Positions 11,701-62,860 of a stretch of DNA of 64,000 nt are shown piece by piece. The translations under genes and the position numbers were made by a program. Under the pieces are notes generated by a model, which saw only the letters and a list, made by a program, of their open reading frames with translations, searched no databases and was not told the DNA's origin. Numbering within the stretch: position 1 is the stretch's first letter; the number at the start of each line of letters is the position of its first letter. Source of the stretch: Bispira polyomma (lineage: Eukaryota); the NCBI GenBank assembly GCA_965649765.1, contig OZ287753.1, forward strand, positions 77,872,001 through 77,936,000, written 5' to 3'.

Positions 11701-14700
11701 ATTACCTTAACTACTAGTTATATGCGCAAGTAAATTTCATCGATTTCTGTTTTCGCAGATTGTGGTATTTTCGCTCATGGCAGACTGGTCCCTACAGGCT
11801 AGCACAGTCCCCATATTAATAGCTGGCACTATCTTACACAAGCACCCACAGCATGTTTTGTATTAGCAGGAAGTTATATTTTCATTTCTGCCCCGTAACC
11901 AGTGGGATTCTTCTGATGTAGGTGCTAGGCCACTTCTTTTAGGCAGCAGAGTATGCAGCCTGTTGGCCCGCTTCCATTCTCATCACTAATGTTGTTGTTC
12001 AATGTTTTTATTATTACAGCTCGTTAGGCCACAGACCTCCACCCTTGTCTCCAGCCAGTCTGCAACCCCACACATGATTCCACCGATTAAGCCTTCTCGG
12101 CCTAATCTGGGCCCTAACCCTCCTGTAGCCCGCCAGGCCTCAACTCACTCTGCTGCAAGGTGTTGGAGGACATCTGGGGAGAGTGAAGACCTACTGCAGG
12201 GGATGCATGAATATGTAGAGGCGAACAACCACAGCCAAGAACGTGTGGCCCAGATGCTGAGCATGCCATTAGCAGATCCACAAGACCCCCGGGAGTCGTG
12301 GGGGCGCTGGCTGATTGCTAGCGCTCGTATGAAAATACACCCCAGTCTTTGGATCCGTTTTGAGGAGGAAGTGAGCAAGACCTACTTCCATTATGCGTTG
12401 GAAAGTGCGGCACTGTATGAGCGCCAGGAACAGGCGCAGACAACACACCCACAGCAGCCAGGCAGTGCCTCCCCATCCCACGTGACACCGGCACCGGGTC
12501 GTCAACCACAGGTCCACAGTACCACACGTTGAGTTTGTCATCCACAGTAACACACCCTTCCTCAAGGGTTTGTCGACCACAGGTCCCCAGTACCACAAGT
12601 CGAAGAGCATTCCCAGCCTGATCATGTGGGCACCTGCCTCAAGGGTTTGTCAACCACAGGTCCACAGTTCCTCAAGGGCCCCTGCTTGGTGACGTCATCA
12701 CCATAGTGAAAAGTGGTATCATGATACTGACATTTTTCTACAGACTACTTAATCATGTCCCCCCCCCTCCCCCCCCCATATCATTTATAAATTGCTATCA
12801 AATTAGCTAAATTGTGCATTAAATTTTGTGGCTTGCATGCAAGTACCTGAAACACAAAGTCTAACAATATCACAATTTCAAAACTGTTCTCATGATAACT
12901 AAACTTAATACTTTCTCTCGATGATAAGATGATATTGCCATATATGATGACCTTGTGCGGGTGGTGCCAGAGACTGTTGATATATATCTTTGTTGGTTTG
13001 TTTTTTCCTCAGCCATTGTAACTTTGAGAAATAAACCAATGTTTTAAATGTCTGCCTGTACATTACCAGAAAAGGACTTGTTGGCCCTCTCTTCCTACAT
13101 ACCAAAAAACATAGAAACTTAAAAATGTAGAATCTAAAAATTACCACAGTACTTGACATCTTGCGCTTCCGACCCAATAAACAGAATTGAACAAAAGTTT
13201 AATGTATAATTTTTGAACTTGTGGGAAGAGTAAGGTACCAAGATGTCACAGGTCACCACTTGGTATCTTTAAATTTTATCTTTTCCACTACACGTTAAAA
13301 ACACTAAAAAAAAAAAGCCAAGAAAGATGAGAGATAGAATGAAAACAAATATAGTGCCCACAAAATGTAGGCTGGAAAAGGTAACGTACCAACAGACCAT
13401 ACATCACAGCAAACCAAAGCTCTAATATTGTTTTGGGAAGATATATTGGCCCTGACATCTTCAGTAACTTCTTTCGGTTGGCAGGTATTAAAAATCTGGG
13501 CATTTAGGCAGCTGCCAGTGCCACCCTCGTCCACCCATACAAACTTATTTGTGTTAATCATATCACGACTGGCAGTTTCATTGGTAGGGTAAAGCAGTTT
13601 AACTAACTGCCAACTTTCCCACTTAAAGCCCCGATCGTGATTCGAACCGGGACCATATAGAGGTGGGAGGCTATAATGTAATGGAAGCCCACAAAAACCT
13701 TATGAAGCAATTATCGTTTATACTACTGCCTGAGTCAGTATCTCTTTGCACATGAATACCTTTTTTACAGTATCAGAGTATCGGCTACTAACTTTAGAAA
13801 AAATTAAAACCTTTAGTTAATAATATTACCCACAGCAACAAGCCACTTGGGGTTCTTGTCCCAAAAAAACCATTTACACAGTTAAACAACATCTGGTACA
13901 AAAAGAAATACTGTACACTATTGAGTGGTAAGTTGGCAAAACAAGAAGTTCTTTCATAATACACAAAATGGATGATTGGATGACATTTAATATGTGTGAC
14001 ATTAAAATCTAATTGCTAGTGAACCTATTGGTGTGTGAAATAAACAACTGTACACTATGTCAAATGGTGTTCTAGCAATCTCAAAAAGACCGGTGCCATA
14101 TAGTATAATATGTGATAACTCGTTTGGACTACCAAGTAGATTAATTTCCGGTGTACGAGTACTTGTGTTATGGTACCTGTAATGTTGCAGAATGAAAAAA
14201 CTGAAGTATAAATTAATCCAAATGACTAAACATTTTAGTGGTGCGTAATGACCAGTGGTCACAGGCATTACTCAAAATGACTGAAAGATCTAGCAGTTTA
14301 TAATACGTTCATGTAATATTTGCCCCAGTTTACTCCAGTTCTGACCAGGTCACACAAGTTCTAAGCAGTTTAAGCCCCGTTTACACAAGTTTTGAGCAGT
14401 TCAACCCCCATGTATGCCCTGTTTATGCCCATTTCCTCCAGTTCTCTCAAGATGTGCTTTCAGAGCCGATCATCCTTGGAAGTTTATGCCCAGTTTACAC
14501 AAGTTTACTCCAGTTCACACACATTCTCAAAACGGGGACCGAGAACGTTGACAGTGTGAATGCCTCGTAACGTAGATGTTAAACTGAAACTTTTCCCAAA
14601 TTCTGTCCTGATCTATGTGTACAATGAGAATAGCTATAATTAGAGGGCATTTTGAGTTCCTTACTGAAAGTTCAAGTTGGTAACCAGAAGCCTGTTCAAC

Positions 14701-17700
14701 CAGGTGTAGGTTGGTTTCTTTAGGTCAGTGTAAACTAAATTTTGAAACCGTTTACTTTAAAGTAAAATGCTTAGAACAAATATGTAATTGAACAGAACTG
14801 CAAACAATTACTTTTTTTCAGTGTCATTGAAAATGTAAACCACATGCGATCAAGTGTCTACAGAAATAGATATATGTGCCACACAACATAGAAATATGAG
14901 AAAGTTTTCTTTGTCAAAACCAAAAAACTAGTTGTCCATTTTACACCTGTGTGCCAACTCTTTCAATGTGCACATGGACTAATCTACCTTTGACATGTCC
15001 AACACAATTCAGTGCTTTGTTTTGGCAAGTTTTCTTGTATAAATGAGACATACTTAAGGATCTTTGTTGTTCATTTGTATTTCACCAAATTACTCTAACC
15101 AGTTAATAACCAGTTGTCGGTTGATTTCAACAACCAACAACCGGCTTAAGAAAATCATAACCCAACTTCATCTCTAATGAAAGTGCTGTTAAAACTTGCT
15201 AATATAATGTATAAATTGACATAACAAATTTCCGCTTAACAGAGTTTCACTATTCTTGAAGATGTATTGTCAGATTCCATTGTGAGTAAACTATTAATTT
15301 TTAACTGATTTTCCTTTGTATATTTTTTAGAACCAATAATGGTGCTCCGGGGAAAGTTCCACTTCTGTAAGTATACATTTAATATCGGAATACGTGACTT
15401 TATGGAAGCCTTTATTCACCCAGTTGCTTTCTTTTGGGTAAGATGTGTCTGTTCTGTGAATGGTGAAAACTTTTAGGGTGTGTACAGTGAAAATCTGCAG
15501 TGTATTACTGCAAAATAACTTTCTGTCAGGACCTCAGAAGTATGTATTTTGGGTAGGAAATGCCTAGGCAAAATAGAACGTAATCTAGTTTTCAGAGCTT
15601 TTCATACTGTCTGGTTTGGATGTGACCTGATATGCGCTAAAAGCATGTTGTAAATATAAAGATGTGGCACTTGAGCGCTCCTAGTAAATAGAATTGTGAC
15701 CAAAGCAAACGTGTTCCTTGAACTGTAAATTATTCTTGAGATCCTACAGATTTGATCTTAGTGGTGTAGATTTTGATTACAGTGTGTGTAGTTATATGCA
15801 TAAAGTTGAAGACCTGTGTGGCTCTAAGCATTGCTGGTGTAATTTACTCCAGATCCGCCAAGTTGCAATATGTCTAAATGTTCGTTCTCTTGAAGGAATA
15901 TGTAAATGTCCAAAAAAATTTCATTTTTTGTCATATTAACTATGAAGTTATACAAAGGAAATTCTAATATAAATAAAAACAAACTTTTTCAGGTATCTAT
16001 CAATATTTTTTTAGTTGAAATTGGTCCTTTCCTTTCGTATACTGATGTATGTATAAATCCGCGCAGTCCATAATGATAATGCATGCAAATAATGGTTGCA
16101 GCTTCAGTCATGGCCCAAAAGTAAACTCTTGTTTATAATTATGTCTCCAGATTACAACATTAACCACGCTCTGAAGATGGTGATCATCAAACCGTTTAAA
16201 GAAGACCTGCTGGGAAAGCCCGAGTTAACAAAGTGGTGCAAGCAGGCCAAACACTTTGATATCCAGAAGCTAGAGGATGGATACAGGTACATGCTTGCAG
16301 GATAAACTCTAATCTTATAGAGGGGCTGCGGGCAGCATAGTGGTTACAAGTGTTTGCTGCACAATCACTGGCCTCTCACAAATGTAGGGTTTAAATCCTG
16401 TTTGTTCCTTCGTGTGGGAAAGTTTTGTCGGGTACTTGCCGTAGGTCGATGGATTAGAGCACTTCAGCACTGGTTTCATTCACCATTGAACCTGGCTATC
16501 GTGTTATGACCTAAGATGTTGAAAGCCACATGGAAATAAAGCTAAATTCAAATCCAAATATTTAATTTTATGACTAATTATATTTCCACCCTCTCCAAAA
16601 TTCATAGGTTTCTACTGCTTTACACTAAAGTGCCTCTTTTATTTGATAAACCTTCTAAATATCCAAACAAAATCATGTTCTCCCAACGTGTCCTGAATAT
16701 ACTACTATTTTTTAGATTCTGTCACTTTATAAAAGTTCGTATTTACACAAAAGTTTTCTACTTTTTTTTTGTCAAAACGAAGTATCTTTAGCTATTTGTT
16801 TAATATTAGTTGTGTGTAGTTTTGATTGTTTGGTTAATAGAAGCTCTATACATATTTTTCTCCATAGCGAGGCTGTCTTGTACTTTGACACAATAGCCAA
16901 GGGTGATGGGGCTTTCGCAGAGTTCAAGGCCACCATCGAGAGTGAGGAGGTGAAGGTCATTCACCCTGCGGCGGCTGATACGGGTATAGCCGCCAACTCT
17001 GTCAGTATTAGTGCAGGACAGTACTGTAAGTTGGATTTTTGTTTTAAGGAAAAACAGAGTGCCTTTTTTTTATTCTTTAGGATGTTTTCTAGTTCCCTAG
17101 TAGTGGGTAAATTATGTTGTACAAATGTGTTATGAGACCAATATTAGGCTAGTACTAGAAGTCAGATTTTGGTTTGAGAAAAAGAAAGTAACTTTTCCTA
17201 TTTTCGAGTGGTAGGTACATTATTTATGGGTCCTTGAATCAATAATCAAAGTGAAAATTCTTTCCATATTGGAGCAATACAACCAAGTAACGGATCGGAT
17301 TTAGACGATGTGGAATTAATTCTGAAGTTTTAGAAATTAAAATAGTAAGTGTATTTGTGACCATTCAGTTTACCTTTTGTAAATGACTAATGGTTCTAAT
17401 TTAAGCAAGAATTCTGCCTTTGAATCACAAGCATTGATAACTTACAATGTGTAACGCATTAAGTTGTGTCACTTATCATCAAAACCTATTTTGTAATAAA
17501 CATGTGTGCAGGACAAAAGTCGCTTTCTTTGACTCCTAGTTTGTTTATTCTGATAGAAGATTATTGATTCATGAGTAGATATGATATGGAGAAAATAAGA
17601 CTACTTAATCTATTATTTGCAAGCAGAGTTTATAAATTTTTTTTTTGCTATTTGTAGCATGTGACTTGCCATTACTTTTCACAAGAACCTAATTTGTTCA

Positions 17701-35058: not shown

Positions 35059-38000
35059 CTATTTCTTACCTCTGCCTCCTCCTTTTTTCCCTCCTTTTTT
35101 CCCTCCTTTCTTTCCCCCACCCTTCCTTCCCCCACCCTTCATTCCCTTGGCTTTGCCCCCACCACGCCTACGTTTTTTCTTGGGTGCTTTTCCTTTCTTT
35201 TTGCCACCTTTCTTTCCACCTTTCTTTTTACCTTTCTCGCCTTTTCCTCTGCCCTTTTTTCCTTTACCTGCCCCCTTGGCCCGCCCTTTGCCAGCACCCT
35301 TACCCCTGGCCGCCCCACCCCGACCACCTCTCCCCTGTGACCCCCCTCTACCGCCTCTCCCCTGTGACCCCCCTCTACCACCCCTCCCACGTGACCCCCC
35401 TCTACCACCCCCTCTTCCCGCACCTCCTCCCCGGGCTACTCCACCACGCCCTCCTGGCTTAGCTACAGCTCCCCGACCCCCACCTACACCTCTACCACCT
35501 CCTGCACCCCTACCACGTCCTGCACCTCTACCACCTGGAGCACCTTTCCCACCTGGAGCACCTTTCCCACCAGGAGCACCTTTTCCACCTGGAGCACCTT
35601 TTCCACCTTCTTTACCACCACCTTTACCTTTTCCATCCTTGCCTTTCCCATCCTTACCTTTGCCTTTCCCATCCTTACCTTTGCCTTTCCCATCCTTACC
35701 TTTGCCTTTCCCATCCTTGCCTTTCCCATCCTTACCTTTGCCTTTCCCATCCTTACCTTTACCTTTCCCCTTGTCTTTGCCCCCCCCTTTCCCACCTTCA
35801 CCTCCTCCATCCCCACCGTCCCCTCCGTCATCATTGCCTCCACCCCCGCCCTGTCCTTGTATCAGGTCCTTGATCTCCTTTGCTGTACCCAACATCTCCA
35901 TAAGCCTGAGGGGCTTCTCCTCCTCTTTGGCTTGTTCCAGCCTTGGATCTGGGTTGGCTGGATACCTGGACTTGTGGTACTGTGGTGTGCCGTACCTCTG
36001 GCTACCATGTGGTGGTACCCTTTGGGATGTAGAGGCTCCGGAAGGATGATGATGGCCAGCAGAAGTCCCTTGATGAGGGCCACCACCCTGATGACCACCA
36101 TATGGTTGACCATACATGCCTTGACCACTCGCACCAGTTTGACCATACCTCTGTACTGCATTCTGACTTTGTCCTGGATGACCAGCTTCAGGTCGTGCTC
36201 CTTGACCATAACTATGGACACCTGCTGGACTATTTGCAGCAACTTGAACATGGGCGTCATGGCGATTCGGACCATGAGCTTCCTGCGGATAGCTTCCATG
36301 TTGACGAGGGTGATCATCTGATCTTCCGAATGGCGTGTTAGTGCCGTATTGGTCTCTAGGTCGGGAATCTTTACCATAGAGGATTCTCTCCGTGAGAGCA
36401 CTGGTCAGAGCACCAGTGACTTCACCGAGAATACCTGTGCACACATGAATAGATAGTGGAACCTCTATTATCTGAACAGACTCACATATGCTGGCTACTA
36501 CCATATTTGGGGTATACTGACAAATCAAACTGATTGGCAATTTTTATTTATTAATCAAAGATGTTTTTGTTACTGTAATGTACAAATTATTTTGCCTAAT
36601 TTTAACACCGGACTGTATAATTCATTAATTGCAGATCCATTTTTAGGGCAAAATATAGTATATTTTGCACAAAGGAGGACATAATACCAGAAATCGTTTG
36701 AGATTGCCGACGGCCTTATTGTGGGTAAATTGTTTGTCCACATCTACAAGTTTCATTGTTTCGGTTTCACAGGTGCTTATATTGATAAGGGACAAGATAC
36801 ACATATCAATATTATAAAATAAACATATCTTATTTTAGAGCAGGTCTGATGTTCTTCTGTATTTGATCAAACTAACACCTTTCCTCATCCTAGTATAACA
36901 TTTTACAGTGGTTTTTACTTGTAAATCCAAATATGTTGTTCATTGTCAATATATTGAATCAAACATTTAGAAAAATCTAACTGAAATAGATTGCTACATG
37001 CATGCAAAACGTGCTGAGTAATTATTCAGAAAATCATTCATGAATTTTCATTACTCCAAGTTACAAATCTTTCATATCTTTTCTGTACAAACCCTACCTC
37101 TTGTTTGTCCAGGCTGATAAAGTCTGCCGCCATAACCATCTCCGTCATATGGTCTCTCTACAACAAAATAAGACATTGGAAGATTGTAACTACACCCCAG
37201 ACGGGACAGCATCAAGTGTAGTAAATAAGACATTGGTAGATTGCAACTACACCATAGCTGTGACAGCCTCAAGTGTAGTAAATAAGACACTAATAGATTG
37301 CAACTACACCCTAGCTGGGACAGCATCAAGTGTAGTAAATAAGACACTGGTATATTCTAACTACACCCTAGCTGGGACAGCATTAAATGTAAATAAGACA
37401 CTAATAGATTGTAACTACACCCTAGCTGGGACAGCATCAAATGTAGTAAATAAGACACTGGTAGATTGTAACTACACCCTAGCTGGGACAGCATCAAATA
37501 AATTACACATTGTCATGTCTTTCTATCTCTGTGTATCTGTATTAGTGAAATAAATATATGACAAAAAATAGATATAACTAGACCTAGCGCATCAGAGAAC
37601 AAGTGCATATTTGTATCCACCAGAAAGATGAACTACCCTAGGTAGCAAGTACCCTAGCTAGCACCTAAGCTAGAAGCATATGATTTCCTATAGCGCATTC
37701 ATGCTAAAGCCTTAAATGGCACAAGTGGGTTTCACATTGCAAAACTGTGGGACCAATAATAAGTGTGAGATAGGCACTTTAAAGTTTGGCCTATCCGTTT
37801 GACCTTGCAAATGACCTTGAACGAGGGGCTCAAGGCCAAATCGTACCACATCAAAAGATTCCCAGGCCATGATTTCTTATAGGTTGGTTTTACATCCATA
37901 TCTTGTTTGACCAAAAATAAGCGAGATATAGGCACTTTTAAGTTTGGCTATCCGCATTCAACCTTGAACGAGGGGCCCAAGGTCAAATCTGAGCACATCA

Positions 38001-44000: not shown

Positions 44001-47000
44001 ATATTGAAAAAAAATATATATATAAAATAAAAAATAATAATATAACACTGAACACTTTAACCTGATTCAGAGATAACTGTTGCTCTGTCCCGATTGGCCG
44101 ATTCCTTTCTTATCAAAGTGTCGATTTGTTTGGTAGAAGAACCTTGCAGTGACGAAGGTAGAGATTTAACTCTGGCGAGACTTGTGGCAGATCTTAATGG
44201 GGAGGTCTGTCTGTTAGGGGTCGAGCAGAACTCTGAAGAATACAATAAAAAGTCAATTAACTCTTTTTGCCCTTAGCTTGTCAACAAGTAGTTGACAGCA
44301 TTCGTTACTCTTAGAACCTATGTCTATCGGCAAGCAGTCGACACCCAAAAAAATATTATTTTAAGTTAGTTCCTCACAATAGGAAATTGTTAGTACAGCA
44401 GACTTATACATGAGACCGCTCTTGAATGCTGGAAGTAATCTCTGATGTGTGTGTTTTAGTGACTCCAACTATCTGTAACCAATTACCCAAAACAATTTCC
44501 TTCAGTTCCCGGGGAGGTCTATTCGTAGACAACTGCCCACGAACCAGGATTTGCTGATGTGACAAATACTGCCTACTACATGATAGCTTTCCTAATTTCA
44601 GTCAAACAATTTTTTTAATAAATTCCAATTTTTATTAAATATTTGCATCTTCAAATCTTCTAGTTTAGCAACTAGCTTTTGGTCGTCATACATATTTCAA
44701 TTTTTTTTGTAATTCCATGTTTAAAGAACATGAGTGTCTTGAATTGGAATATATATAGCTTTTAGTGGATAATAGAAGAATATTGATGGTAAGGAGGTTG
44801 CTATCTGTAGTTAAATATCCTAGAATGTATTCCAAAGGAGCCAGCATTATATTAATACCTGTCTTGGTTTTAATCCATGCTTCTACCTGTTTCCAAAAAT
44901 TAAGAGTAACAGGACAAAGAGAGAAGAGATGAATTATAGATCCTGGGGAGGATTTACCCAGTTAGCGATTCAGAGATGAAACTATACATATTTTATTAAG
45001 TAGTTTCTGGGTACCAAGAATACGATGCAAAATTCTATACTCAAATCAAATAAGGTAGTTGTCCTGGATTGTTTTAAAACATGTTTTTAATGCCTGTTGC
45101 CATGTACCTTTATCAATATTCATGTCTAGCTCAGCTTTCCATATATTTTTAAAGTTCATGTCAAAGCAGGTCTTATTCAAGATTTTATAAAATCGTTTGG
45201 CTCCTTGGTTGTGACAGAACAGGACTGACAATTGATTTGGTAGACAAGGTTGTTCAAAGTTAAACTTTAAGTAGGCCAAAGATCAAATCCAAGAATTTTA
45301 AGAATATTTCTCACTCATGGTTAAGATAACTGCCAAAAATAATTTTGTTCGATATTATATTGAAGGGGATATTGAAGGAAGACCATGTGACGGCGGCAAG
45401 GAAAACTAGAGGTGAAACCAAATAAGCGCCCTTTTCAAGGGACGCTTAATAAAGATACTGGAATTCCGAAAACACATGCTATTTATTGCAAACCAGTATA
45501 AAACTATATCTATTGAATCAAAAAATAGTTTTTTTGTTAGTAAACTATTGATATTTGAGAGTTTTTGGCACTTCTTACTTGTTTCTGTGCCTAATGCACA
45601 TGTTTTAATTTGATTTTCGATTACTTCCTGTTCTTGAGGTTCCGTTCCATTTCCAGTATTTGGGTTGGATTTGGTTGTTGTGCCTTAGAATCCACTAGTA
45701 TGGAGAGTAAGCGCCATTATGAAATATATTAGATTAGATTATTTCCAGTTAAAACAATGGGTGGGCCCGAATATCAGATGTAATGTACTTCCAGCAGTTA
45801 CTCAACTTTCACTCAAGTCCCATCCTAGGGCAAGGTGGGCATTAACTGTTACCTCACCACGATTCACCAGTAAACACGAGTCGAGTGGCCCCCCCGAATG
45901 TAGCACAAGTTCTAGTGGGCATAACCACGATAGGCCGAGCTGCCAGGCACAACTTATAACCTCTAATTGCAAGTAGCAGATCCAATGAATTAATGCCATA
46001 TATTGATAGATTAATTTTTTGGGTGGTATCACTGAAACAGAAATCGTTTTTGACAAGCGATATATCTCGGACCCGAATTCTTGCTACCCACTAACTAAAA
46101 GCGGGATTTAAAATGTAGGTACGTAAAGAGTAGAAGTAAGTGTACAACAAACTCACCAGGTGTAAATGCCATGGCCTCTTCATCCTTATCATACACTCTG
46201 GAGTATTTCTTGTGTACTCCAGGTCCACTACGGATTGAGGAGAACCTGCGTAAACTACCACCGGGGGAGCGGAATCGTCTCTGAGAAGACTGCACGCTGT
46301 ACACTTCACTTCCTGCAAATATGGAATGCTCAAATAAGACAAATATAGTACTGTTTAAGTGGAACTATTAACTGAAACAACAATGTCACTATACTTCATA
46401 GTAGGGTGTGTAGTGTGTTGCTTAGAAATCAGTAGTGCGATATACACGTACTTCGATAATCCATTGACAATACGTGTAGCAATTTGCAACATATTGAATC
46501 GTAAAAACTTTGCCAAAATTAGAGCCAGTTTTAAAATCAAATGACTTTCTGTCCGCGTACAAAAGCTTCCACAGTAAAAAATGGAATCAGTAATGTTAGA
46601 AAACTGTAAACATGATAAAAATCAAAGCAATATTTAATTGATTTAATGTAGACTATAATTGCATTGTTTTACTTCTGATTCTATTGCTAACACATATCTC
46701 TTGTATGCTTTCACACTTTATTTCTAGAATACAAGAAGTAAGCAATATTTTAAGATTTTATGTAAAAAATTATTTATCCAATATGTATCGCTTTTCCAAT
46801 TTTGTATTGCACTATGTTGTAATTGAAAACATATATTGGGATATTCAATATATGGTTGCAACCTTATGATGCAATCACACTGTCCCAGTTCTCGCCATGT
46901 TTATACCAGTTTACTCCTGATCATTAGAACTTGGATGGTCGCGAGAGCATTGGGAAAAAATGTTCTTTTGCATTTGCATATCCTGTTTATGCACAGTTTT

Positions 47001-49302
47001 GACCAGATCTTACCAGTTTATGACGAGTTTATACCCATACCAGATCAGATCAAAGCAGTTCATCACACATTCATGTAACATTCGCTTCAGATTACACTAA
47101 ATTACACCAGTTCTGGCCAGATCACACGAGTTCTAAGCAGTTTAAGCCCTGTTTACACAAGTTCTTAAGCCCTGTTTATGACCTGTTTATGCTCCGACCA
47201 CACCTCTCATCTCTAGACGGCTGTGGCAATGTAAACGCCCTTATCACACTGCCGCTACTAGTTTTTATGGCTTTAATTTGGGGATAAACCACTTCAAAAC
47301 ATTTTTAGATCAATAAAACTCCACTTATGACAGTTCTGTTTGAGACTGAATTGCTCAAGAACAGAAACCAAAAACCGGAAAGATAGTAATGACCACACTT
47401 CAAATTATTCCTCAATTAAAAAAATCCACTTCTCACAATTGTCGTTTCTTTTGTAACCCTACATAAGCCACGTTCGACTGGTAGGAAAGATACTTATCTT
47501 ATTTAATCTAAAAGAAGGGTAAGTATCTCTAACCGTTCGTCTGGTCAATATTCAAAAAAAGATAAGTACCAAAGTTATACACATATCTCGGTGGTTAACT
47601 TTCTAAACAAACCACGTGACTGCCTTGAAAATATAAGGTTTTGATAGGTTTTAGTAGAGAGCACTCTGAAGTTTTAACTTCCATATAAGGATATTTAGTT
47701 GTCTTTGATTTTCGACTAGGCAACCACCATGTATTACGTTTTATATAATGATGATAATATAATTTAATATGCCCTTAAATGTACACAGATTTGCGTGAAT
47801 ACTTATATTATATGGCTGCATTATTAATCAAATAGGTTAGCATTTCGAAAAGTATTGTTTTTTTTTGTAGAATATTGCTATATTGCCCATTATGTACATG
47901 GTATACTTTGAGTCTGTTCTTCGCCAATTTCCATTTGCCTCCGGTTATAGATACTTATTTTTCCTGTGCGACTGCTAGCAAAATAGTTAAGTATCTCTGT
48001 CACTGCGCAGGTAGGCCGAGTTTGCAGATAAGTATCTGTAACCCTACCAGTAGAACAGCCAAATAGACTCACTTTTGGTGAGAGGAACCATGTCATCTGG
48101 TCTGTCTGCCACATCTAAACCACCCATCTTGAAAAGGTAGCCTGGAGAGGGTGCAGCGGGGAAACCCCAGCCGATAGCAATGTTAGTGGTCCGTTCAAAG
48201 TATCGCAGACAGAAAAGATATAATATCTATATTAAAAAAAAAAAAACAAAGATAAAAAAACAATCATATTAAATTTGTGGAAAGAAGATTTAGCAACACT
48301 GTAATATACCATATTACATTGCACTTTTTAATCCTCAATAAACTATTGTCAAAAAAATGGTGGAACTGCAATGTTAAATATAAATACAAAGAAGACGGGG
48401 AAACATTCAAGGGAATTACGCAGCCCACACTTATGCTTGCCCACTATCTTGGGACCAAACAGGTAGTTATGAATGAGGCTAAACTCTGGAATTCACTGGA
48501 CAGGCAGAACTGTACCGTAGAATTGTTCCAAAATTAGAGACACACAGTAGGCGTAAGTTCATTTGCTGTTCTGACTGTATATTTTGTTTCCTTGAGTAAA
48601 TGCAACTTTTGTGTGACTTTGCCTCCTTTTTTGCAATAATTTGTAGGTAATCCATTCGATCTGAATCTACTGCAGAGCTACGTTCTGAGAAAGATCAAAA
48701 GATTACTGAACGGGTTACGACTCAGTGCATTTGACAACCGAATCCTATGAACTATGAATCTAGGTTTGACGGATTGTGTTTGTGAAATATTCCCAGTATT
48801 GAGGAGATGTTTAGGGGGAATTAGAACATACCTGCATTATTAAGGCAGTTACAAGGAAGCCTGTCAAGTGTTGAACCACCGCACTCAACAACAATCCGGC
48901 CGAGGAGTCATGCCCAGTGAAGTGCATGGCAATCTGATTCCAGTTCACTTTCGCCATAATGACGGAGATGAAGAAAAGCACCACGAACACTGCCCGTGCG
49001 ATAATATAAGGAAGCAGAAACTTGGCTCGCCGTTCACGTGTCTCCCACTTGATGCAATCGTAGATGAGCTTGGCACCGGCACAATGTGACGTCAGGCAGA
49101 ACACGGCCACAGCCATGACAAACTGCAGGGAGCCTACGGGCAGGGACGTGTCCTCTATTGCATTGTGTGTACGAAGATTGGACACTGCCAGGGAACTGGC
49201 AATAACAACGGACACATTCTCCACCAACAGAACAATCTCGGCTACCAGAAGGAAGACCGCCAAACGGCGGCGAGCCTTTTCTGTAAAATTAAGCTTACAC
49301 AT
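35059..49302 (-). CDS. Peripherin-2/ROM1-like four-TM protein lacking the EC2 loop, with a long disordered and polybasic Gly/Lys/Arg C-terminal tail (about 891 aa long form; about 367 aa if the 26-nt exon is included)
   Basis: Exons (minus): 49302-48832, 48226-48073, 46312-46157, 45683-45579 (weak AAG acceptor), 44232-44062, [42949-42924, 26 nt], 42784-42716, 39731-39675, 38612-38556, 37157-37098, 36434-35059. Matches to recalled PRPH2: KLNFTEKARRRLA vs KVKFDQKKRVKLA; GAKLIYDC..FLLPY vs AGKICYDA..WLKPY; LRYF..PSPGYLF vs LRYL..ESQGWLL. The TM part and the tail part are each well supported; their linkage in one mRNA is inferred from phase-1 continuity. Confidence 0.75.
37165..37500. repeat. Minisatellite, about 60-bp unit x6
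   Basis: aaataagacactggtagattgtaactacaccctagctgggacagcatcaagtgtagt is repeated; this explains ORFs 37072..37347 and 37101..37553. Confidence 0.9.
38820..39150 (-). repeat. Inverted 1-2 monomer relative of the 142-bp satellite
   Basis: aaatcgctctatct..cagaaattcaagatggctgccaaaat..ccctgtgggtcgaaaatgag is the reverse complement of the satellite monomer. Confidence 0.75.
39785..40130 (-). mobile_element. SINE with Deu/Nin-like domain (related fragment at about 32090-32290 +)
   Basis: ctcagctccctcagggagcatac, caggtacccattgatacacctgggtagagagg, ccttgtccaagggtac, and a tRNA-like head ..ccctaaccattagaccac. It is flanked by agatag on both sides and absent from the paralogous duplicated block at about 38660. 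Confidence 0.7.
40301..41717. mobile_element. Non-autonomous hAT-like DNA transposon, 1417 bp
   Basis: TIRs tagtggtgtcatcac and gcgatgtcaccacta, with a perfect 8-bp TSD tacagcat (40293-40300 and 41718-41725). Confidence 0.85.
43380..43680 (-). mobile_element. SINE-like element with an internal tandem duplication of about 108 bp
   Basis: tttagcctgccactgggaggatgggacccaaagacagagaacaa occurs twice; tRNA-like end gggatcgaac..ttacccactgggccac. Confidence 0.55.
44600..45340 (-). mobile_element. 3' fragment of an L1/Tx1-like LINE
   Basis: KRFYKILNK..KNIWKAEL..WQQALKTCFKTIQDNYLI*FEYRILHRILGT is typical of the region before the C-terminal zinc finger in Tx1-like ORF2. Confidence 0.7.
46875..47240. 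mobile_element. Non-autonomous relative of the Harbinger element
   Basis: ccagttctggccagatcacacgagttctaagcagtttaagccctgtttacacaagtt is nearly identical to 14335-14392. Confidence 0.65.
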
Positions 49303-49590
49303 GGTTTATATATATAATTGTCTTTAATATTAAACGGGATCCGTTATATTATGTCACCATTTTCGTTTTGTTTGTTTCTGTTTGTGTCCGTTGTTTTCAT
49401 CTGTTTCCGTTTCTAGAGGAGTTTGACCTAGTTACAAACTATGACGTCATTCATGTGTTGTGTACAAGACGTCATAATAGGTTGGTTCGTATTTGCATAG
49501 TGACCTATTTAAACGTCACAAATGACGTAATAATCTTCGGCAAACTGAAGGATTAGTTTTATTACGTCGTCACCATATACAAACAGTTAA

Positions 49591-50467: not shown

Positions 50468-52603
50468 TTAATTTGGTGATACCGTATGTAGAATTTGTAA
50501 TGTCGAAAACACTGCGTGTACAAAAAATATTGACCTAAATGTGTAGATGAACGCAGTTTATCCTGCAAAACATTAATTGTGTCACTTGCACAAATATTCT
50601 ATAGCAGTCTACATTTTTTTAGCAATAGCCAATGTATTTTTTTTCTCAGAACCACTACACCCGTGGACATTGATTGGAACGATTTTTAAATAGATAATAA
50701 ATCAATATACCCACGTTCATATGTGTTTATATAATTTAGCCAGATTTTAGTTTTACTTCCAGATGCTTACTGTGTCTAGTAACTTTAGAAACGTGTATTA
50801 GAGCCTTGCAATTTTTATGTTCTTAGCATATGCATACATGCTGTGGAAATAAATCAACTGCACTGATCAAAGTCGAGCTTTGGCTTTGGGTTCATGATCA
50901 ACCTAGTGGTGTTAAGATCAGTTTTTCTTTATAGATAGTATTTTTGGAAATTCAATTTCAGTCGTTCAGTCGAGTTTTATGACCCATATAAATAGCGATT
51001 TTTTAAATTCTTTATCTCAATATATCAACTTTAGTATTGCTTTTTCACTGTTGAAATATACGTTATAAGCTTACAGGGAATTTGAATAAGTTTTCACCTT
51101 CAGCTGAAACACAAAAGTTAAAGTGGGAGACCCAATTTGTTATGTTTCTGAGACAACTTTATCTGGAAATGTTGTGTTGTATTGTACATACTTAATTTTT
51201 CATTTTTAGTGCACATTATTGGTGCAAGGCATGTTCTAAAGCGCAACAACAGAATCAATTCAGCAATCGAGAAGTTCATAGCACATATATATTTCGAATT
51301 TTTTAGGAAAAAGACAAACTGCCCTCAGCATTGAATATTTAGATAAATATTTTTGCATTAAAAAAACAAACAAAACATATTTGGAAAAGAAACCTTTCAG
51401 TTACCATTTACCATTTCAGCAGAACCGTTTTATCAAAGTTTTCAATACAAGATTTTAAGAGTGTTAAATTCTAAAGTTAATTGTTATAAATGGAAATTAG
51501 CAGAGAATCCAAATTGTAATTCATGCATGATGAGGAGATAGGTTTTTAGTTTTCTCCTGAACACATAAAATGTTTCTATCGGTCTAAGCTCAACAGGGAG
51601 ATTATTCCATAACAAAGGGGCAGCAATTGATGATTTTCTGTCTCATGCGCCTTAGAATCTGCTAGCACAGAGATAAGTGCTATAAAAGTTAGGATAGATT
51701 AGATTTGATAAAAGAGAAACGAGGGAAGGGTTTGTGGCTTGAATATAATCGAAATGCCGAAGTTTTCTACTTTTACATACACTTGTTTTCTTTTACTTGA
51801 AATGTCTTAGTTAATGGGTTTCAATGGATTTTAATCTTTTTAAAACATTCAGAAAGTATATCATTTTATGTTTTAGGACATATGCCTTTACATTTTTAGC
51901 TTCAATATTCACAGAGTGAGATAGTACAATTTAAGGTTTTCTCAATGTAGACTCCACACAGAACGTATATTGAATAGTAGTATCAATGGTAATGCTTTGG
52001 CTCCTATGAAGCTCTTTTTATGTATATGACAGAGTTTGTCAAATGAAAATAAAATGGCGTGGTTTGTTGTTGCAAGTAAAAATAAGTTATAAATTCTCCC
52101 ACTTTTGTTGTTATTTCTTTGGATGTGGGGGGGGGGGGGGATGTATAGGGAGGGAACTCAGGGTGGTAATCAAATTTAAAGACATAGGTTTTAAGTTTCT
52201 CCTAAACCCAGAAAGTGTTTCTAGTGATCTAAGCTAAACTGGGAGACTATTTCATGGCATATATAGGGGCAGCGATTAAGAAAACTCTAGATCCAGCCAT
52301 CTTGGTCGGTATAACCGAAAAAAAAAGTCGCTTTCCTTTTCTGCAGTTACTAAAGGAAAGACAAGCAGCAAAGTAGGACGGCTGTTGTGGGACAACAGTC
52401 TTGAAAGTGGTGAGATGTATTTCAAACAGAATTTGATAATGAATGGGAATATAATCTTTGTAACTAAGTTTACAGGAAGGTTCATTGATGTAACATTAAA
52501 AGTCAAAATAGGTTCCACAGATGATCTTGCAAAATTCTGCCACATGCCAATTATAATTACTTCCACCGAGGAGCTTGTATTTTGCTTGTGCCTGTTGGTG
52601 CGT

Positions 52604-55600
52604 CTATTTGTCATCCGGGTTACCCTGCTTATACTCGACCTGTTTACATTAACTTTGGTATTGGTGGTGGTGATGGGGGGTGTGGGTGGGGTTGTATGGC
52701 CCAAAGAAGGTAGTGGTGGGAGGGTTGTATGGCCCAAAGAAGGTAGTGGTGGTGGGGGGGGGGGTTGGTCCAAAGAAGGTAGTGGTGGGGGGGTTGTATG
52801 GTCCAAAGAAGGTAGTGGTGGTGGGGGGGGGGGGGGGTTGTATGGTCCAAAGAAGGTAGTGGTGGGGGGGTTGTATGGTCCAAAGAAGGTAGTGGTGGGG
52901 GGGTTGTATGGTCCAAAGAAGGTAGTGGTGGGGAGTTGTATGGTCCAAGAAGAATCCATTCCATTTTGGAGCTGATGTGGGAAAATGGGCACATCCAAAA
53001 CAATTTTTTAACTCTTTGGCACTGAGACATTTTAGCATTCTTTACTATCATGACTTTGAATTGTTCCTGCTTGAAGAGTATAACTGTATGCCCATTGGGG
53101 GCTTGAGTTTTGTTTAATAAAATATAATAAAATGCAAATCAATTTATACATTTATTTCAACTTTTACTATCTTGTAGAAATGCGTCAAGTCTCTGTAGCT
53201 TTCCTAAACACTGTCAGCATTTTTCTGTCAGTCTAAAACTTGTGGAAAAATGCAGATAATACATCCTTACCACTATTTTTCAACTACAAAAGACAAGCAA
53301 AAAAATTGGTATAAAGATTTCATTTAGAGCATATAGTTAATACATCACATTCAGCAGGAAATTAAACTGAAATTTTTTGGGTCTTACTATGTGCCAGACA
53401 AAAACATCTTGCTGGTACTTACTAGATTATATATATTTTAACTGTTGATTAGTTTAACGTTAAAATTGATACAGATGTAAGTTTTTGTTCGGCTTAAATT
53501 TCCACTATAGGTGAACTTTAAAAGGGATAACAGAATAAATTTAACTTTAAAATTTAAACTTTATAGTTTAAAAGCAATGTCTATAGTGTTTGTAAATGTG
53601 TAATAGACTACATTTTAACCCTTTTAAGTCGAACCTCAATGGATCATTAGAAATACCTCTACTAAAGCAAGATTTCCACTTAACAGGGTAGAGTTTTAAA
53701 GAAAAAACTTTTGTGGGGACTACCAATTTTTCCCCACATTACAGGAGAAATTGACTTAACAGAGTTCTACTTAAAGGGGTTCAACTGTGTATAATCATTT
53801 TTCCACTTGCCTGTATTTTGGGGTTAACGTGCTGACATTCCTCTGGTGTTTCAAACACGCTCTCATCTGCAATACCTTCTTTAAATCCATGGAAGGTGGA
53901 GTACCAGGAATAGGCTGTAATCGGTAACATATAAATGGTGAGCTTTTTTTATCATTTACAGTATAGAACCTCTCTTCTCTGGGCCTCTGTATTACCACAA
54001 TAGTCAACTCAAGTTCACTCTCCCAAGATTTAGTTTTATACTTTAGGTACCATGATACACTGCTTAGTCTACCCAATGCCCCTTTGCAAATAGCAGTCTA
54101 GATACAAGTTCCAGCTTTCGTGGGTTTCTGACACCTCTATTACTCAGTCAACCCAATGTCACTTTACTACAAATTACGGCTTATTTACAAATCTCAGATT
54201 CTTCCACCTCCATTACTTAGTCTATCCAATGTCATGTTACTACAATTTGCGTTATACCTACAAATCTCAGATTCTTCCGCTTCCGCTACTTAGTCAATCA
54301 AATTCCCATTAACATAGTGCAGCCTACTTACAAATCTCAGTTTCTGGAGTCTTCCGCTTAGTTAACCCAAAATGTCAACGTGCAATTTATCACCTACTGT
54401 TAAGTTTCTGGAGTCAGTGACAAGTCTACTATTAGTTAGTCTATCCAAAGTCCCTTTACAAATTGAGGCCTACTTAAAATACTTAAAAGTTTCTGTAACC
54501 TCTACTACTATTTGATCTACCCAAGTGTCGCTTAATAATATTGCAGTCTGCTAACGCATCTCAGTCTCTCGCACCTCCACCATTAGGCCAACAATTAACG
54601 TCCCTTGACAAACTTAAGGTCTACTTACAAATCTCCGTTTCTGGACTTTCCGACACCTCCACTCTTCTCATGGTAAAAGTAACACAGTCCTCGGTCACTC
54701 TCATGTGGAAGGAGTCACTCTGCCTCTCCATGGGAATCTCATAGGACTGTAGCTCAAGAGATGCTCCGGATACACCCGCGTAGTAGCTGTTGGTATGCTC
54801 TGCATCAGCTGTGAACAGTGTAAAACCTCTATTGTCACAAGAAGGGTATTTATGTAGAGCTTGGGCCATGGTCACAAACATTCTAACAATACCAGAACTT
54901 CCTTAGTCTCAGCCAATCCAATATGGTCAGCAAGTCAAATTGCTCGAGACAAAATGAATTGAACAATATAAGAAGCTTTGTGAATACCAGCCCAGATTAT
55001 GTGGGAATTTATGTTAAATACAATGGAACCTCTATTTTTCACAACATGTTGGGAGAGTAAGAATATTGCCAGGGTTATAGAAGCTTTGAAGTATAAAACA
55101 ATAGGGAAATATGTAAATAAATAAATATTAAGAAAACAACAGTTTGGAAAACATAAGTTATATATGCTGTATTCCTGTTATTGAAATCATTAAACAAAAA
55201 TAGAGCATATTTTGTGCTTTTCCCAAAAAAGATTCAAACAAAAATAAAGCATATTTTGTGCTTTTCCAAACAGTACAAATTTAAAAGGAATATTACTAAA
55301 GCCTCAGTCTTTAGCCGAGTTGATATTTGACCCAATTTTGTGTACCTAGTACAATATTAAAGATATTAAAATTACACCTGTAAAGTTTCACATTTAAACA
55401 AAGCATACTCTCTGGAAAAAATTTAAAAATGTGAACACAAATAAGGACTCTGAACCATACACTTCATATACAGCTGCTTTCTCAAGTGATTTCCCAGCTC
55501 AGATTTCTCAGCTCAGATTCCCCCCCCCCCCCCCTCTCAACATTAGGGTCACCCTAACCTAAGGATGTTGGGCTGTTTTTCATACCTAAGGTTACCTTAA

Positions 55601-58869: not shown

Positions 58870-61800
58870 TGCCACAATGCCGATCATACCCCCCACCTTA
58901 ACGATTATAAGTTCGGGGGCCATTATCAGGCACGATCAGCCCAACCAATGACTCTTTTAGATTCAGGACACTCACAGAGGTTTTTAAACATGTCAGAAAA
59001 CCTCTGCGAGTAAGTGTTAGTTCCCTGTGTACCAGTGAAGTAGGGTCAGGGTCAGGTAGAGATCAAATTGACTAACACTGTCATATGCGGTTCAATATTT
59101 ATTCTGCTGTTTGTATGTTAACTTGAGGTTTTTATGGTAACTTAAGGTTACTATAACTTAATGGCAACTTAAGGTTACCATAAATTAACTTTACGGGAGG
59201 ACTTAAGGTCCCCTAAATAAATAATTTTATTCAAGTAGTTCTACATATACATGGATAGAAAGTTACAATTCAGTTGAATTTGTTGAACGCAAGCAACAAT
59301 ACAAGCAACAATATTTAATTTTTTAACTTCAGAAAACAAGCAACAAGATTTAATTTTTAACTGAGAACGCAAGCAACAATACAAGCGACAAGGTTCAATT
59401 TATAACTGAGAACACAAGCAACAACATTTCAGTTTGAACAAAACTTGTTAATTGCATGAAAGGATATACTGGATACCCGGATAGGTGTACGCCTATCCCG
59501 CTAACTAGAAGCACCCAAACCCTAACAGTGTAGTAGAAAAAGGGGGGAAGGTAGTACGTTATAGTTGCTGCTTGAAAGTATTAGCTACCTGCTGACTGGC
59601 ATCAACAGAATCAGTGACATATTGCCATACATAGTCGGATGTCCAGGTGCCATGTTTCTGAATGTTATGTATACTAACATTGTGATTGAAAGCAAAGGTG
59701 GCGCCTGATCGTCGTCGGAAGGCATGGAAGGCAAGCCCTAAGTGTTCCAGGCCTAATTTTGTAAGAACAATTTTGAAATGAACTCGGACCCCAGTGACAG
59801 TGAGCGGAAGCCATGTCTGATTCAGTTTGAATTGGAACAAGGGTGAGTTGTTGCCCGGAGGTGTTATAGCTAAAGCAGTCCGCAAGGCCCTGACAGGGCA
59901 CAAGGGGGAATCCGGTAGCTGAGGAATTGTGAGAAATTTGGGTGAAATCCTGGGTGAAACATAACATCAGCCTGAGCTAGGTGTTTCAAGGCGGAAATTT
60001 TGAGGTCGTATGTGGTACCAGGTTTGAAAGCCTCAGAAATGAAAACAAACTAAGCAGATAGACTGCTTTCAAGACTTGACCCACGTAGATAGTATTACAG
60101 ATAGACACAATATTTCAGTACTGACATCAATGACCTTCTTAAGTTTGACATGCAATGGTGCGGCTGATAGGGTGGCCTTCTGATAGCAGGCTATCCTGGG
60201 ATCACTAAAAGCCTGTACTCGCACATTATGGATGATTGATTGGGCCTTAATGACCGACAGGTAGTTAGTCATTTGGGCTGGTTTGACTGAGTTATAGTGT
60301 AGCAATTTTAGAAAGGATAACAGGTCAACCACTGTGACCTTGGCAAGGGGTTGGTCAATGAAGAGAGTAAAGGCCACAATTATCCTGTACATGGCATTTT
60401 AAGCCCTGGTCGTGGAGCTACAGAAGGCCACAGGTAGCTTTTTAGTGGCTTTGGTGAACAGCAACCGCTGGACTGGGGTGACATCTGAAATACATTACGC
60501 TACAGAGGATACTTTACTTTATATCTGATCATTTACTTGTGAGTAATCCTGGTTTACACGGCACCACTGAGTGTGGCCCACAGGTCAGGTAATTGGGTAT
60601 GATTTTGAGGGGTATCTGACCGACGTGATAACAGTTCAGCCACCCGTGTTATTTTCATCTAATTTGTGAATAACCTTAAGGTCAACATTGTGTTGACTTG
60701 CTAGCATGAAGATGTTGCGGGCGTAAAATGCTAGGACACTGTCTCTTGTTCTACCAGTGATTAAAACACTGACCACTGCCTGGTTATCACATTTGATTAG
60801 TATTCTTTGGGCATGCCACATGTCCCCCCCATAGCTGAAGAGCCACAAAAATGTTGAGCATTTCCAAAGAAGCAATATTTTGAGATTGAAGTTCAGTTGG
60901 TATAGCCAGGGTGTACACGTACTTGGTTGCCATATATTCCCCATAGTCGTTAAGCAGGCATCCAGTTCTACCATAGCTGTGGTGGGTTTGTGATAGATGA
61001 AGGATACCCCATTGAATTTTTCGAGAAATATTTTGAACCATTGTAAATCTTTATAAAATTCAGGACTTATGGTGAATGTTTTGCTATGAGTATTGCTTCT
61101 GAGGAGTTGCAACATTCTGTTGAGGAAGAACCTGGCATACCAGACACATTTAGAGACATACAATAGGAAACCAAGGAGAGATTGGAGCTCTGTTTTGGTA
61201 CACCATTTTTGTTAACCTATTGCTGGCACATAGTTTTAATGCATTTTAATTTGTCCTCAGGTATGGAGGTGGTGAAGTCCATGGTATCTACCACAACACC
61301 CAGGCATATAACCCTGGTATGTGGAGGTACTAAATTCTTATGGCTAAGGGTTAACCCTAATTCGGACAACAAGGCCTGTAAACGTTCCTATGTGTGGAAT
61401 ATTTTGCTGGGAACTGAGCAACATAAGAGGTCATCAATGTAGTTCAAGATTGTGTGACCTTCACCTTGCATGATTAACCTTTTATCTGCATCTGAAAGTC
61501 TCTGAAAAATGGCAGACCCATGTTTGTACCCAAAAGGTAAAGAATCTAAGTAGTAGCCCTTCAAAAAGAGGCCCAGTAAATCTATATCCCCAGGGTCTAT
61601 GGTGACGTGTCGGAAAGCTTACATCTACCTTAAAAATAAGAGATCCCCTTCCCATGTGCAGTACTTGGTTGGTTATGGCATCTATGGAGGGGTAAGTAAG
61701 TACAACATTTTTATTCAAATAAGCAGATGGGGAGACACTAGAATTTACAGACTCACCCACAGGCCAGCTGAGGTCAATAATGACCTTCCTGTTATTCGAA

Positions 61801-62860
61801 CCTGACTTATCTCTGGTCATAAAGGGAGAAGTATGTAAGTCAGTAATAGGGGGTTTATCATAAGGGCCATATATAGTCCCCATCTCACGTTCCTCCTTGA
61901 GGTAGTGGTCCACATGGCTGGGGTACTGCCTAGCTGAAAGGTGGTTAATTTGGTCTGAATTTGCCTTAAGTTTTCTATTATAGTCAAGGGGAAACCCAAA
62001 CTTAATTAGCAGGGGGAGTTCCCAGTGCCAGTATTGTTTGAGATATGTTCCCCATACTTCATAATTAAGTTGTACCTTAACAGGTACTTGTAACCCTTTG
62101 TAGTTATGACGGCCATCTTGTCTGAGGTCTCTGTGGAGGTGGAAAATATTTGAGTATAAGTATTGGTCACTGGAGTGGTCAGTAATTTTTCCCCCATTTT
62201 ACTAAGAGGAATAAAACCGAATTTTAATTTGTTTTGACTGTCCTACAGTTTATAAGTATCACAGTGAGAGGCATTACAAACGGACTGTGTGTTATTTCCT
62301 ACACTACATAAGTCTGAGGTATATTTGTCTGGCTCTATATTATCAGAATTCTCTGCATTACACACACTGTGTACTTCAATCCCTATTAGTGAATTACTTG
62401 GACCTATCCCTACACAATCTGTTTCTAGAGACGGCACAGGGTGTTTTATTATTATCCACACTGTGTAAGTCTGGGGTATATTTCTCTGGCTGTATACTAT
62501 TAGAATACTTTGCAGTACACCCACTGTGTGCTTCAATCCCAGTTTGTGAGTTAATTGACCCCATCCCCATAATTTCTATTTCTAGAGACGGCTCCACACA
62601 GAATGGATATTGCGGTTTTAAAATACTGAATGTACCAGCCAGCATGTTGATTGCTGTTTGTAAGTATGATTCACTGGGGACAGTGGATCAGCTCTACTAG
62701 GTGGGCCCTCTCCTCGATTGTGTGCTTGTTGGAAGAACTGATAAAAGGTTTATTACCTGGTGTACTTAATAAAGCCACATTTTTTGTCAAATCTTTGCTG
62801 GTATTCTTATTATTTAGACAATTTATTTTACTTTGTCTCCCAACACAGTCACATTATTTA
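58870..62860 (-). mobile_element. Decayed tyrosine-recombinase retrotransposon (DIRS order, Ngaro/PAT-like); boundaries approximate
   Basis: RT: SPFMTRDKSGSNNRKVIIDLSWP, IFKVDVS, and NYIDD at about 61430-61443. RNase H: ELDACLT and CDNQAVVSVL. Tyrosine recombinase: CPVRAL..HAFRRRSGAT..HGTWTSD. The order RT-RH-YR is diagnostic. Many frameshifts. Confidence 0.9.

Follow-up and report, generated by a model that had tools for sequence, protein, structure and literature searches.

A large extracellular loop is the defining feature of tetraspanins, and a gene that keeps the four membrane segments of the family but has lost this loop raises the question of where it came from and what it could still do. 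We found such a gene in a 64,000-nucleotide stretch of DNA from Bispira polyomma (assembly GCA_965649765.1, contig OZ287753.1, positions 77,872,001 to 77,936,000 of the forward strand), hereafter called the window, in whose own coordinates positions are given unless another locus is named. The gene was homologous to peripherin-2 (PRPH2) and ROM1, lacked nearly all of the large loop (EC2, called D2 in PRPH2/ROM1), and had a conserved exon structure maintained by purifying selection. We consider it likely that this was a functional single-copy gene and a derived, loop-less member of the peripherin/RDS lineage. The locus had been singled out in an initial reading of the letters made without database searches (the sequence-only reading).

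The gene was located on the minus strand and consisted of four exons with 954 nucleotides (nt) of coding sequence (318 codons), whose summed lengths and splice phases were consistent with each other. Exon 1 (49302-48832) was a single ATG-initiated open frame of 157 codons ending in phase 0 at a donor in which CAG was followed by GTATGT. It encoded the cytoplasmic N-terminus, transmembrane segments (TM) 1 to 3, a short link on the lumenal side and the initial two thirds of TM4, the last residue being Gln157 (...IMQ). Intron 1 (48227-48831; 605 nt, phase 0) interrupted TM4 directly behind its conserved Gln/Glu and had a TAG acceptor. Exon 2 (48073-48226; 154 nt, GTGAGT donor, phase 1) opened at 48226 with ILYLFC-LRY and encoded, in this order, the end of TM4, the L-R-Y motif, and two conserved motifs of the cytoplasmic side, GWGFP and PGYLF. 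Exon 3 (46157-46312; 156 nt, acceptor TTTGCAG, donor GTGAGT, phase 1 at both ends) encoded a part of the tail that was rich in Ser/Arg and had motifs of the R-R-x-S type. Exon 4 (44057-44232) consisted of 173 nt of Ser-rich tail and the TAA stop at 44059-44057; its 3' end was less certain, and its counterpart in a related species may splice further. A paralogue search of the same genome with the window gene returned nothing beyond the gene itself. As a separate observation, intron 2 was filled with very high-copy repeats (47440-48060 and 46900-47260; unitig depth 1e3 to 6e4 versus about 10-100 for the exons). These were short units containing AAGTATCT in both orientations that looked like miniature inverted-repeat transposable elements or short interspersed elements, and many chimeric read joints arose in them.

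The product of exon 1 had the four-TM architecture of tetraspanins both by hydropathy (residues 12-41, 53-77, 93-121 and 136-156) and in an AlphaFold2 model (helices 8-50, 57-85, 89-129 and 134-156; mean predicted local distance difference test score (pLDDT) 78.8, predicted template modelling score (pTM) 0.71). Helices 3 and 4 of the model were connected by a turn of just 4 residues (130-133), and the whole TM3-TM4 link, the remnant of EC2, spanned 19 residues (K118-G136; 48895-48951, minus strand) with neither cysteine nor CCG nor PxxCC. The cysteines of exon 1 were at residues 2, 69, 74 and 83. Thus, neither the large loop of tetraspanins, with its CCG and four or more cysteines, nor the seven-cysteine D2 loop of PRPH2/ROM1, with the intermolecular C150, was present in this protein. 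Hydropathy and cysteine positions agreed with the sequence-only reading, which had described four hydrophobic segments and a cysteine-free gap of only 20-30 residues between TM3 and TM4. Its further claim that the entire EC2/D2 had been lost held for the CCG motif and the loop cysteines but not for the start of helix A, since about 12-17 residues of the link region aligned with it, consistent with the extension of model helix 3 to residue 129.

A number of polar residues were buried in the membrane core, namely Glu21 and Glu28 in TM1, His73 in TM2, Arg103 in TM3, and Gln143, His144 and Gln157 in TM4. Polar membrane residues conserved in tetraspanins include an Asn in TM1 and a Glu/Gln in TM4, the latter being the only conserved TM4 position of the family (PMC1190194). 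This TM4 residue was kept as Gln157 in the window gene and was also Gln in the canonical peripherin-like gene of the same genome described below, and it was Glu in two further relatives, P0002 and P0003. The position of the TM1 Asn was occupied by Glu21 in the window gene, Asp in P0003 and His in P0002, and a TM3 Glu/Gln was not evident. The cytoplasmic TM2-TM3 loop carried the motif K-W-E-T-R-E-R (residues 85-91; 49030-49050, minus strand). Judging from homology, both termini would be cytoplasmic. The cysteine at residue 2, together with the MGCC or MGTCC starts of the relatives, suggests N-terminal lipidation. The cytoplasmic tail of about 155 residues was Ser/Arg-rich with R-R-x-S-type sites and is probably disordered and phosphorylated.

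The assignment to peripherin-2/ROM1, already made in the sequence-only reading, was supported by sequence and profile searches. When 1.84 billion cluster representatives were searched exhaustively with phmmer, only three matches were obtained. P0001 was the corresponding exon of the orthologue from the related species (locus L006), P0002 matched over residues 2-121 with E 2.9e-5, and P0003, which like its relative P0004 was loop-less, matched with E 3.3e-5. P0002 had an intact CCG loop, exceeded the cut-off of the Pfam tetraspanin model PF00335 with 38.9 bits, and found peripherin-2 (1.7e-7) and ROM1 (1.9e-6) as its best matches in the PDB. This link was reciprocal, because the best match of P0002 in the 1.04-Gb genome was the window gene. 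Moreover, a profile (alignment A3) built solely from the four loop-less exon-1 products was compared with 177,635 distinct PDB sequences at E <= 10 and matched one of them, peripherin-2 (7zw1_A), with E 5.5e-6. Colinearity extended from the cytoplasmic N-terminus through TM3 and took in both the N-terminal part outside the membrane and the TM2-TM3 loop. Additionally, hhalign aligned the loop-less profile with an opossum member of the peripherin family (P0006) at a probability of 95% and E 2.4e-8. The family was very sparse in protein collections, with six proteins in all, and a scan of JGI metagenomes with the loop-less profile gave no locus.

In a tree of TM1-TM3, the loop-less sequences, P0002 and P0005 formed one group, separate from the canonical genes (support 90/89). 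Two marks of this subfamily, common to P0002/P0005 and P0003/P0004, were K-W-K/E-T-R-E between TM2 and TM3 and the histidine in TM2. The similarity was not limited to exon 1, as exon 2 of the window gene matched exon 2 of the P0003 gene (L011:2349-2471) with E 6e-6, and GWGFP and PGYLF were present in both. By the CCG loop and the Pfam model the protein is not a strict tetraspanin, and by descent it is placed in the peripherin lineage.

The position of the intron in TM4 pointed to the same lineage. In the window gene, the junction between IMQ and ILYLFC-LRY was in phase 0, after the TM4 Gln and 6 residues before L-R-Y. In the canonical gene of the same genome, the junction between FFLQ and VGLIFL-SRF was also in phase 0, after the TM4 Gln and 6 residues before the R-aromatic motif, with a GTAAGG donor. 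The exon of the P0002 gene encoding EC2 and TM4 ended with FIFE before GTAAGC, again in phase 0, and exon 1 of the P0003 gene ended with VVE before GTAAGA. In human PRPH2, the variant c.828+1G>A is a change at the exon 2 donor (PMC12594906), which puts the end of this exon behind codon 276 and its phase at 0. This exon end agreed with the statement in the sequence-only reading that human PRPH2 has its intron at the same place. Intron 1 of the window gene is the positional homologue of intron 2 in canonical genes of the peripherin family.

The canonical gene mentioned above was a three-exon peripherin/ROM1-like gene at about 77.10 Mb (C2:77099000-77108800 of the genome; in the extracted locus L013, which together with L009 covers it, exon 1 at 8750-8214, exon 2 at 4350-4123 and exon 3 from 2020, minus strand). 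Its exon 1 reached into EC2 past the CCG, and exon 2 carried PFSCC, GC and the beginning of TM4. A search with canonical exon 1 gave a single match, the orthologue P0007 from the related species, which was 76% identical. Canonical and loop-less genes coexisted in this genome and in the related species. The two genes of this genome had the TM1-TM3 layout and the phase-0 TM4 intron in common. However, the canonical gene differed from the window gene in its full EC2 (CCG, PFSCC and GC), its three exons, the absence of the K-W-K/E-T-R-E motif, and an identity of only about 15% over TM1-TM3. The closest loop-bearing relatives of the window gene were P0002 and P0005 from metagenome-derived animal contigs, which had K-W-K-T-R-E, the TM2 histidine and the same TM4 intron but differed in possessing an intact EC2 with an intron inside it.

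The likeness to vertebrate PRPH2/ROM1 comprised the colinear region from the N-terminus to TM3, the four TM segments, the TM4 Glu/Gln with a phase-0 intron directly behind it, 6 residues ahead of (L/V/S)-R-(Y/F), a weakly matching aromatic motif of the G-Y-L-F or G-W-L-L type about 19 residues past the R-aromatic motif, and the cytoplasmic tail. In contrast to PRPH2/ROM1, the window gene had no EC2/D2, no CCG, PxxCC or C150-type cysteine, and no canonical intron 1. Its tail was about 155 residues long, compared with about 65 in PRPH2/ROM1, and no amphipathic helix was evident in it, no dedicated test having been made. A further parallel was human CD53 Iso2, a splice isoform with near-complete loss of the large loop (Hochheimer et al. 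2019, PMC6773723). Isoforms of this type likewise present a four-TM tetraspanin core without the large loop. However, they are minor splice products, whereas the loss in the window gene was fixed in the gene, conserved, and under purifying selection. Our literature search gave no report of a conserved relative of peripherin whose gene itself lacks the loop.

All four exons were found in the related species (L006; ENA ERZ22147071) in the same order and with the same phases, at 9956-10426, 10791-10943, 13172-13303 and 16041-16220 for exons 1 to 4. The protein identities of these exons to those of the window gene were 69, 65, 50 and 45%, respectively. Intron 1 of L006 was 364 nt long and had no detectable similarity to the 605-nt intron 1 of the window gene. 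For exon 1, the proportion of nonsynonymous differences (pN) was 0.20 and that of synonymous differences (pS) was 0.83 (saturated); with the counts summed over the four exons, pN was 0.245 and pS 0.727. A second loop-less pair, P0003/P0004 (loci L011/L014), had a protein identity of 79%, pN 0.12, pS 0.70, and a ratio of nonsynonymous to synonymous rates (omega) of about 0.07. DNA similarity between the members of this pair started and stopped at exon edges. Since pN was far below pS and similarity was confined to exons, these were constrained coding exons rather than decaying copies. The sequence-only reading had named neutral evolution coupled with a lack of transcripts among the findings that would speak against it, and the exons proved to be under constraint rather than neutral. 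Judged by these counts, two deeply diverged loop-less lineages, with two species in each, are under strong purifying selection.

How the loop was lost can be proposed from the gene structures. The ancestral gene would have had three exons, the first encoding TM1-TM3 and the first half of EC2, the second the rest of EC2 and the start of TM4, and the third the end of TM4 and the tail. An in-frame deletion from shortly past TM3 to shortly before TM4 would then have removed nearly all of EC2 along with intron 1 and fused the first two exons, and the phase-0 intron in TM4 would have survived it. In each of the four loop-less genes, a single exon spanned everything between the start codon and the TM4 Glu/Gln, and a single in-frame genomic deletion appears to be the simplest history.

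The loss would also have changed the way in which the protein assembles. PRPH2 and ROM1 form non-covalent tetramers via the D2 loop, and their higher-order oligomers need the C150 disulfide (PMC7140794). Peripherin-type D2-loop tetramers and C150-type disulfide chains would be impossible for the window protein because it had no lumenal cysteine and no EC2 interface, in line with the proposal of the sequence-only reading that lumenal disulfide oligomerisation was no longer used. The most likely mechanism, in our opinion, is that the membrane core acts as a wedge or scaffold, possibly in lateral contact with other tetraspanins such as the canonical paralogue, and that the output is provided by partners recruited by the Ser/Arg-rich tail. 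More broadly, we tentatively suggest that the loop-less genes may represent an old spiralian branch of peripherins consisting of a core and a tail only. In such a branch, the core would shape or organise membranes alone or cap the oligomers of the canonical paralogue, and the phosphorylatable tail would serve as a regulated output.

Of the alternative explanations, the one that survived best accepted the same origin but assigned the protein a mainly regulatory role. Namely, the loop-less protein would bind its canonical paralogue through TM contacts and cap or limit its oligomers or control its exit from the endoplasmic reticulum. The coexistence of both genes in this genome and in the related species fits this role, and similar roles have been speculated on for tetraspanin isoforms without the loop (Hochheimer et al., PMC6773723). 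However, the bulk of PRPH2/ROM1 interactions is mediated by the very D2 loop that this protein lacks (PMC7140794), and we regard this role as rather unlikely.

The next alternative was that the gene encoded an unrelated small four-TM protein, similar to DUF7027/DUF4728, MARVEL or sarcospan proteins, and that its likeness to peripherin was noise from hydrophobic helices. Several of our results weigh against descent from peripherin and have to be considered here. Even at E <= 1, PF00335 matched neither of the first two exons of the window gene and none of the four loop-less members, and a single-sequence phmmer search of the PDB gave nothing at E <= 10. Foldseek found nothing in the PDB at E <= 0.001 with the exon-1 model. 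Synaptogyrin came first in that search (E 0.08) and PRPH2 second (E 0.22), the latter with the highest query-normalised TM-score (0.62). VIA-align placed PRPH2 fourth (Z 14.8) in a series that began with a designed bundle (Z 16) and sarcospan (Z 15) and continued after PRPH2 with synaptophysin, synaptogyrin and uroplakin. In the PRPH2 alignment, model residues 3-157 corresponded to PRPH2 5-276 (154 aligned, root mean square deviation 3.0). Since Z values of about 14 are common among helical bundles, the fold results are consistent with a tetraspanin core and do not prove it. The structural check proposed in the sequence-only reading thus returned the four helices and PRPH2 among the neighbours but no significant Foldseek match. 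In the tails, L-R-Y/P-G-Y-L-F aligned with V-R-Y/D-G-W-L-L of the canonical tails at equal spacing with both MAFFT and hhalign, but the match was weak (E 0.012, probability 3.5%). The support for a single loop-less clade in the TM1-TM3 tree was only 53/38, too low to tell one loss of the loop from two. Finally, the exon structure and its splice junctions were predicted from genomic DNA.

The unrelated origin could also draw on a weak Pfam match to DUF7027 (PF22954; E 0.0059, 16.9 bits with a cut-off of 27) and on the ESM Atlas, where the neighbours were unnamed or belonged to DUF7027/DUF4728 clusters with scores of 0.84-0.89. Synaptogyrin and sarcospan were, as described, among the top fold matches. 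However, DUF7027 was touched by one of the four loop-less members only and below the gathering threshold, and the ESM Atlas scores were all below 0.9, which made them leads only. Sarcospan, synaptogyrin and synaptophysin are four-TM scaffolds with short outer loops (Z 13-15) and had no sequence relation to the window protein. On the other hand, the peripherin-2 match of the profile was unique in the PDB as well as colinear, the link to P0002 held in both directions, and the position and phase of the TM4 intron were identical in three genes. Thus, an unrelated four-TM protein seemed improbable, and descent from the peripherin lineage was preferred.

Another alternative was that EC2 was supplied by alternative splicing, with a cryptic donor after TM3 leading to cassette exons that encode the loop. 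Human tetraspanins are indeed made both as isoforms that contain the large loop and as isoforms that lack it (PMC6773723). We compared seven EC2 pieces (from P0002, P0005, P0006, P0007 and the canonical gene) with the 64-kb window and 20 kb of L006 in six frames by tblastn and found nothing convincing, the sole match (E 0.03) being inside the Ser/Pro-rich exon 4; no EC2-like coding was found in intron 1 either. A hidden loop exon is therefore unlikely. Moreover, the link and TM4 were as conserved as the rest of exon 1 (27/40 positions compared with L006), and P0003 and P0004 had the same fused exon layout. The observation of the sequence-only reading that the link and most of TM4 were located in one uninterrupted exon was borne out by the open frame of exon 1 and by the unitigs described next. 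Taken with these results, splicing as the source of the loop was very improbable, and the loss was better placed in the gene itself.

The least probable explanation, a decaying truncated duplicate or an assembly artefact, had the great rarity of the family in protein collections in its favour but was already largely refuted by intact frames with matched splice phases in two species, by the low pN and exon-bounded conservation described above, and by unitigs of two samples identical to the assembly. Namely, a 1018-nt Logan unitig spanned 48596-49400 in each of three public DNA runs (from two samples) with zero differences and at single-copy depth. Because the unitigs reproduced this stretch without difference, there was no assembly deletion in exon 1, which the sequence-only reading had listed as a finding that would overturn it.

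A gene of this kind is relevant to what is known of the family. The D2 loop of PRPH2/ROM1 harbours most disease mutations and mediates the greater part of the protein's interactions (PMC7140794). The literature describes the RDS family as "free of indels", and in a 2010 survey reliable orthologues were missing from protostomes (PMC2965184). Should the host be an annelid, the canonical gene would be a protostome member of the RDS lineage. That purifying selection maintains a loop-less gene in at least four species suggests that the core and the tail have a loop-independent function worth keeping. Such a gene may serve as a natural construct to separate the activities of the core and the tail (curvature, trafficking and lateral association) from the loop-driven oligomerisation of peripherin.

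A few minor observations were made at the related loci and elsewhere in the window. An apparent shared tail motif in L014 was dropped, as it was a duplicated repeat with stop codons. At 1011-1187 of L011 and 1239-1393 of L014 (minus strand), a calpain-like exon was recognised by eye, arranged head-to-head about 400 nt upstream of the loop-less gene; this neighbourhood was absent from the window and from L006. In the window, a 493-codon open frame at 35059-36540 (minus strand) coincided with a G+C-rich island (GC content 0.46, strong negative GC skew). The second half of this frame contained Gly/Lys and Gly/Arg repeats of the GKGKGKD and GGRGG types. Either a gene of low complexity or a repeat that is open by chance may underlie it. 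Tandem proline-rich repeats with long open frames in several reading frames of both strands at 52276-53051 were probably a minisatellite rather than a gene. Finally, translations inspected by eye showed mobile-element-like fragments at 2702-3130 and 59559-61913 (both minus strand), with pieces resembling the reverse transcriptase of long interspersed elements and pieces resembling retroelements or recombinases.

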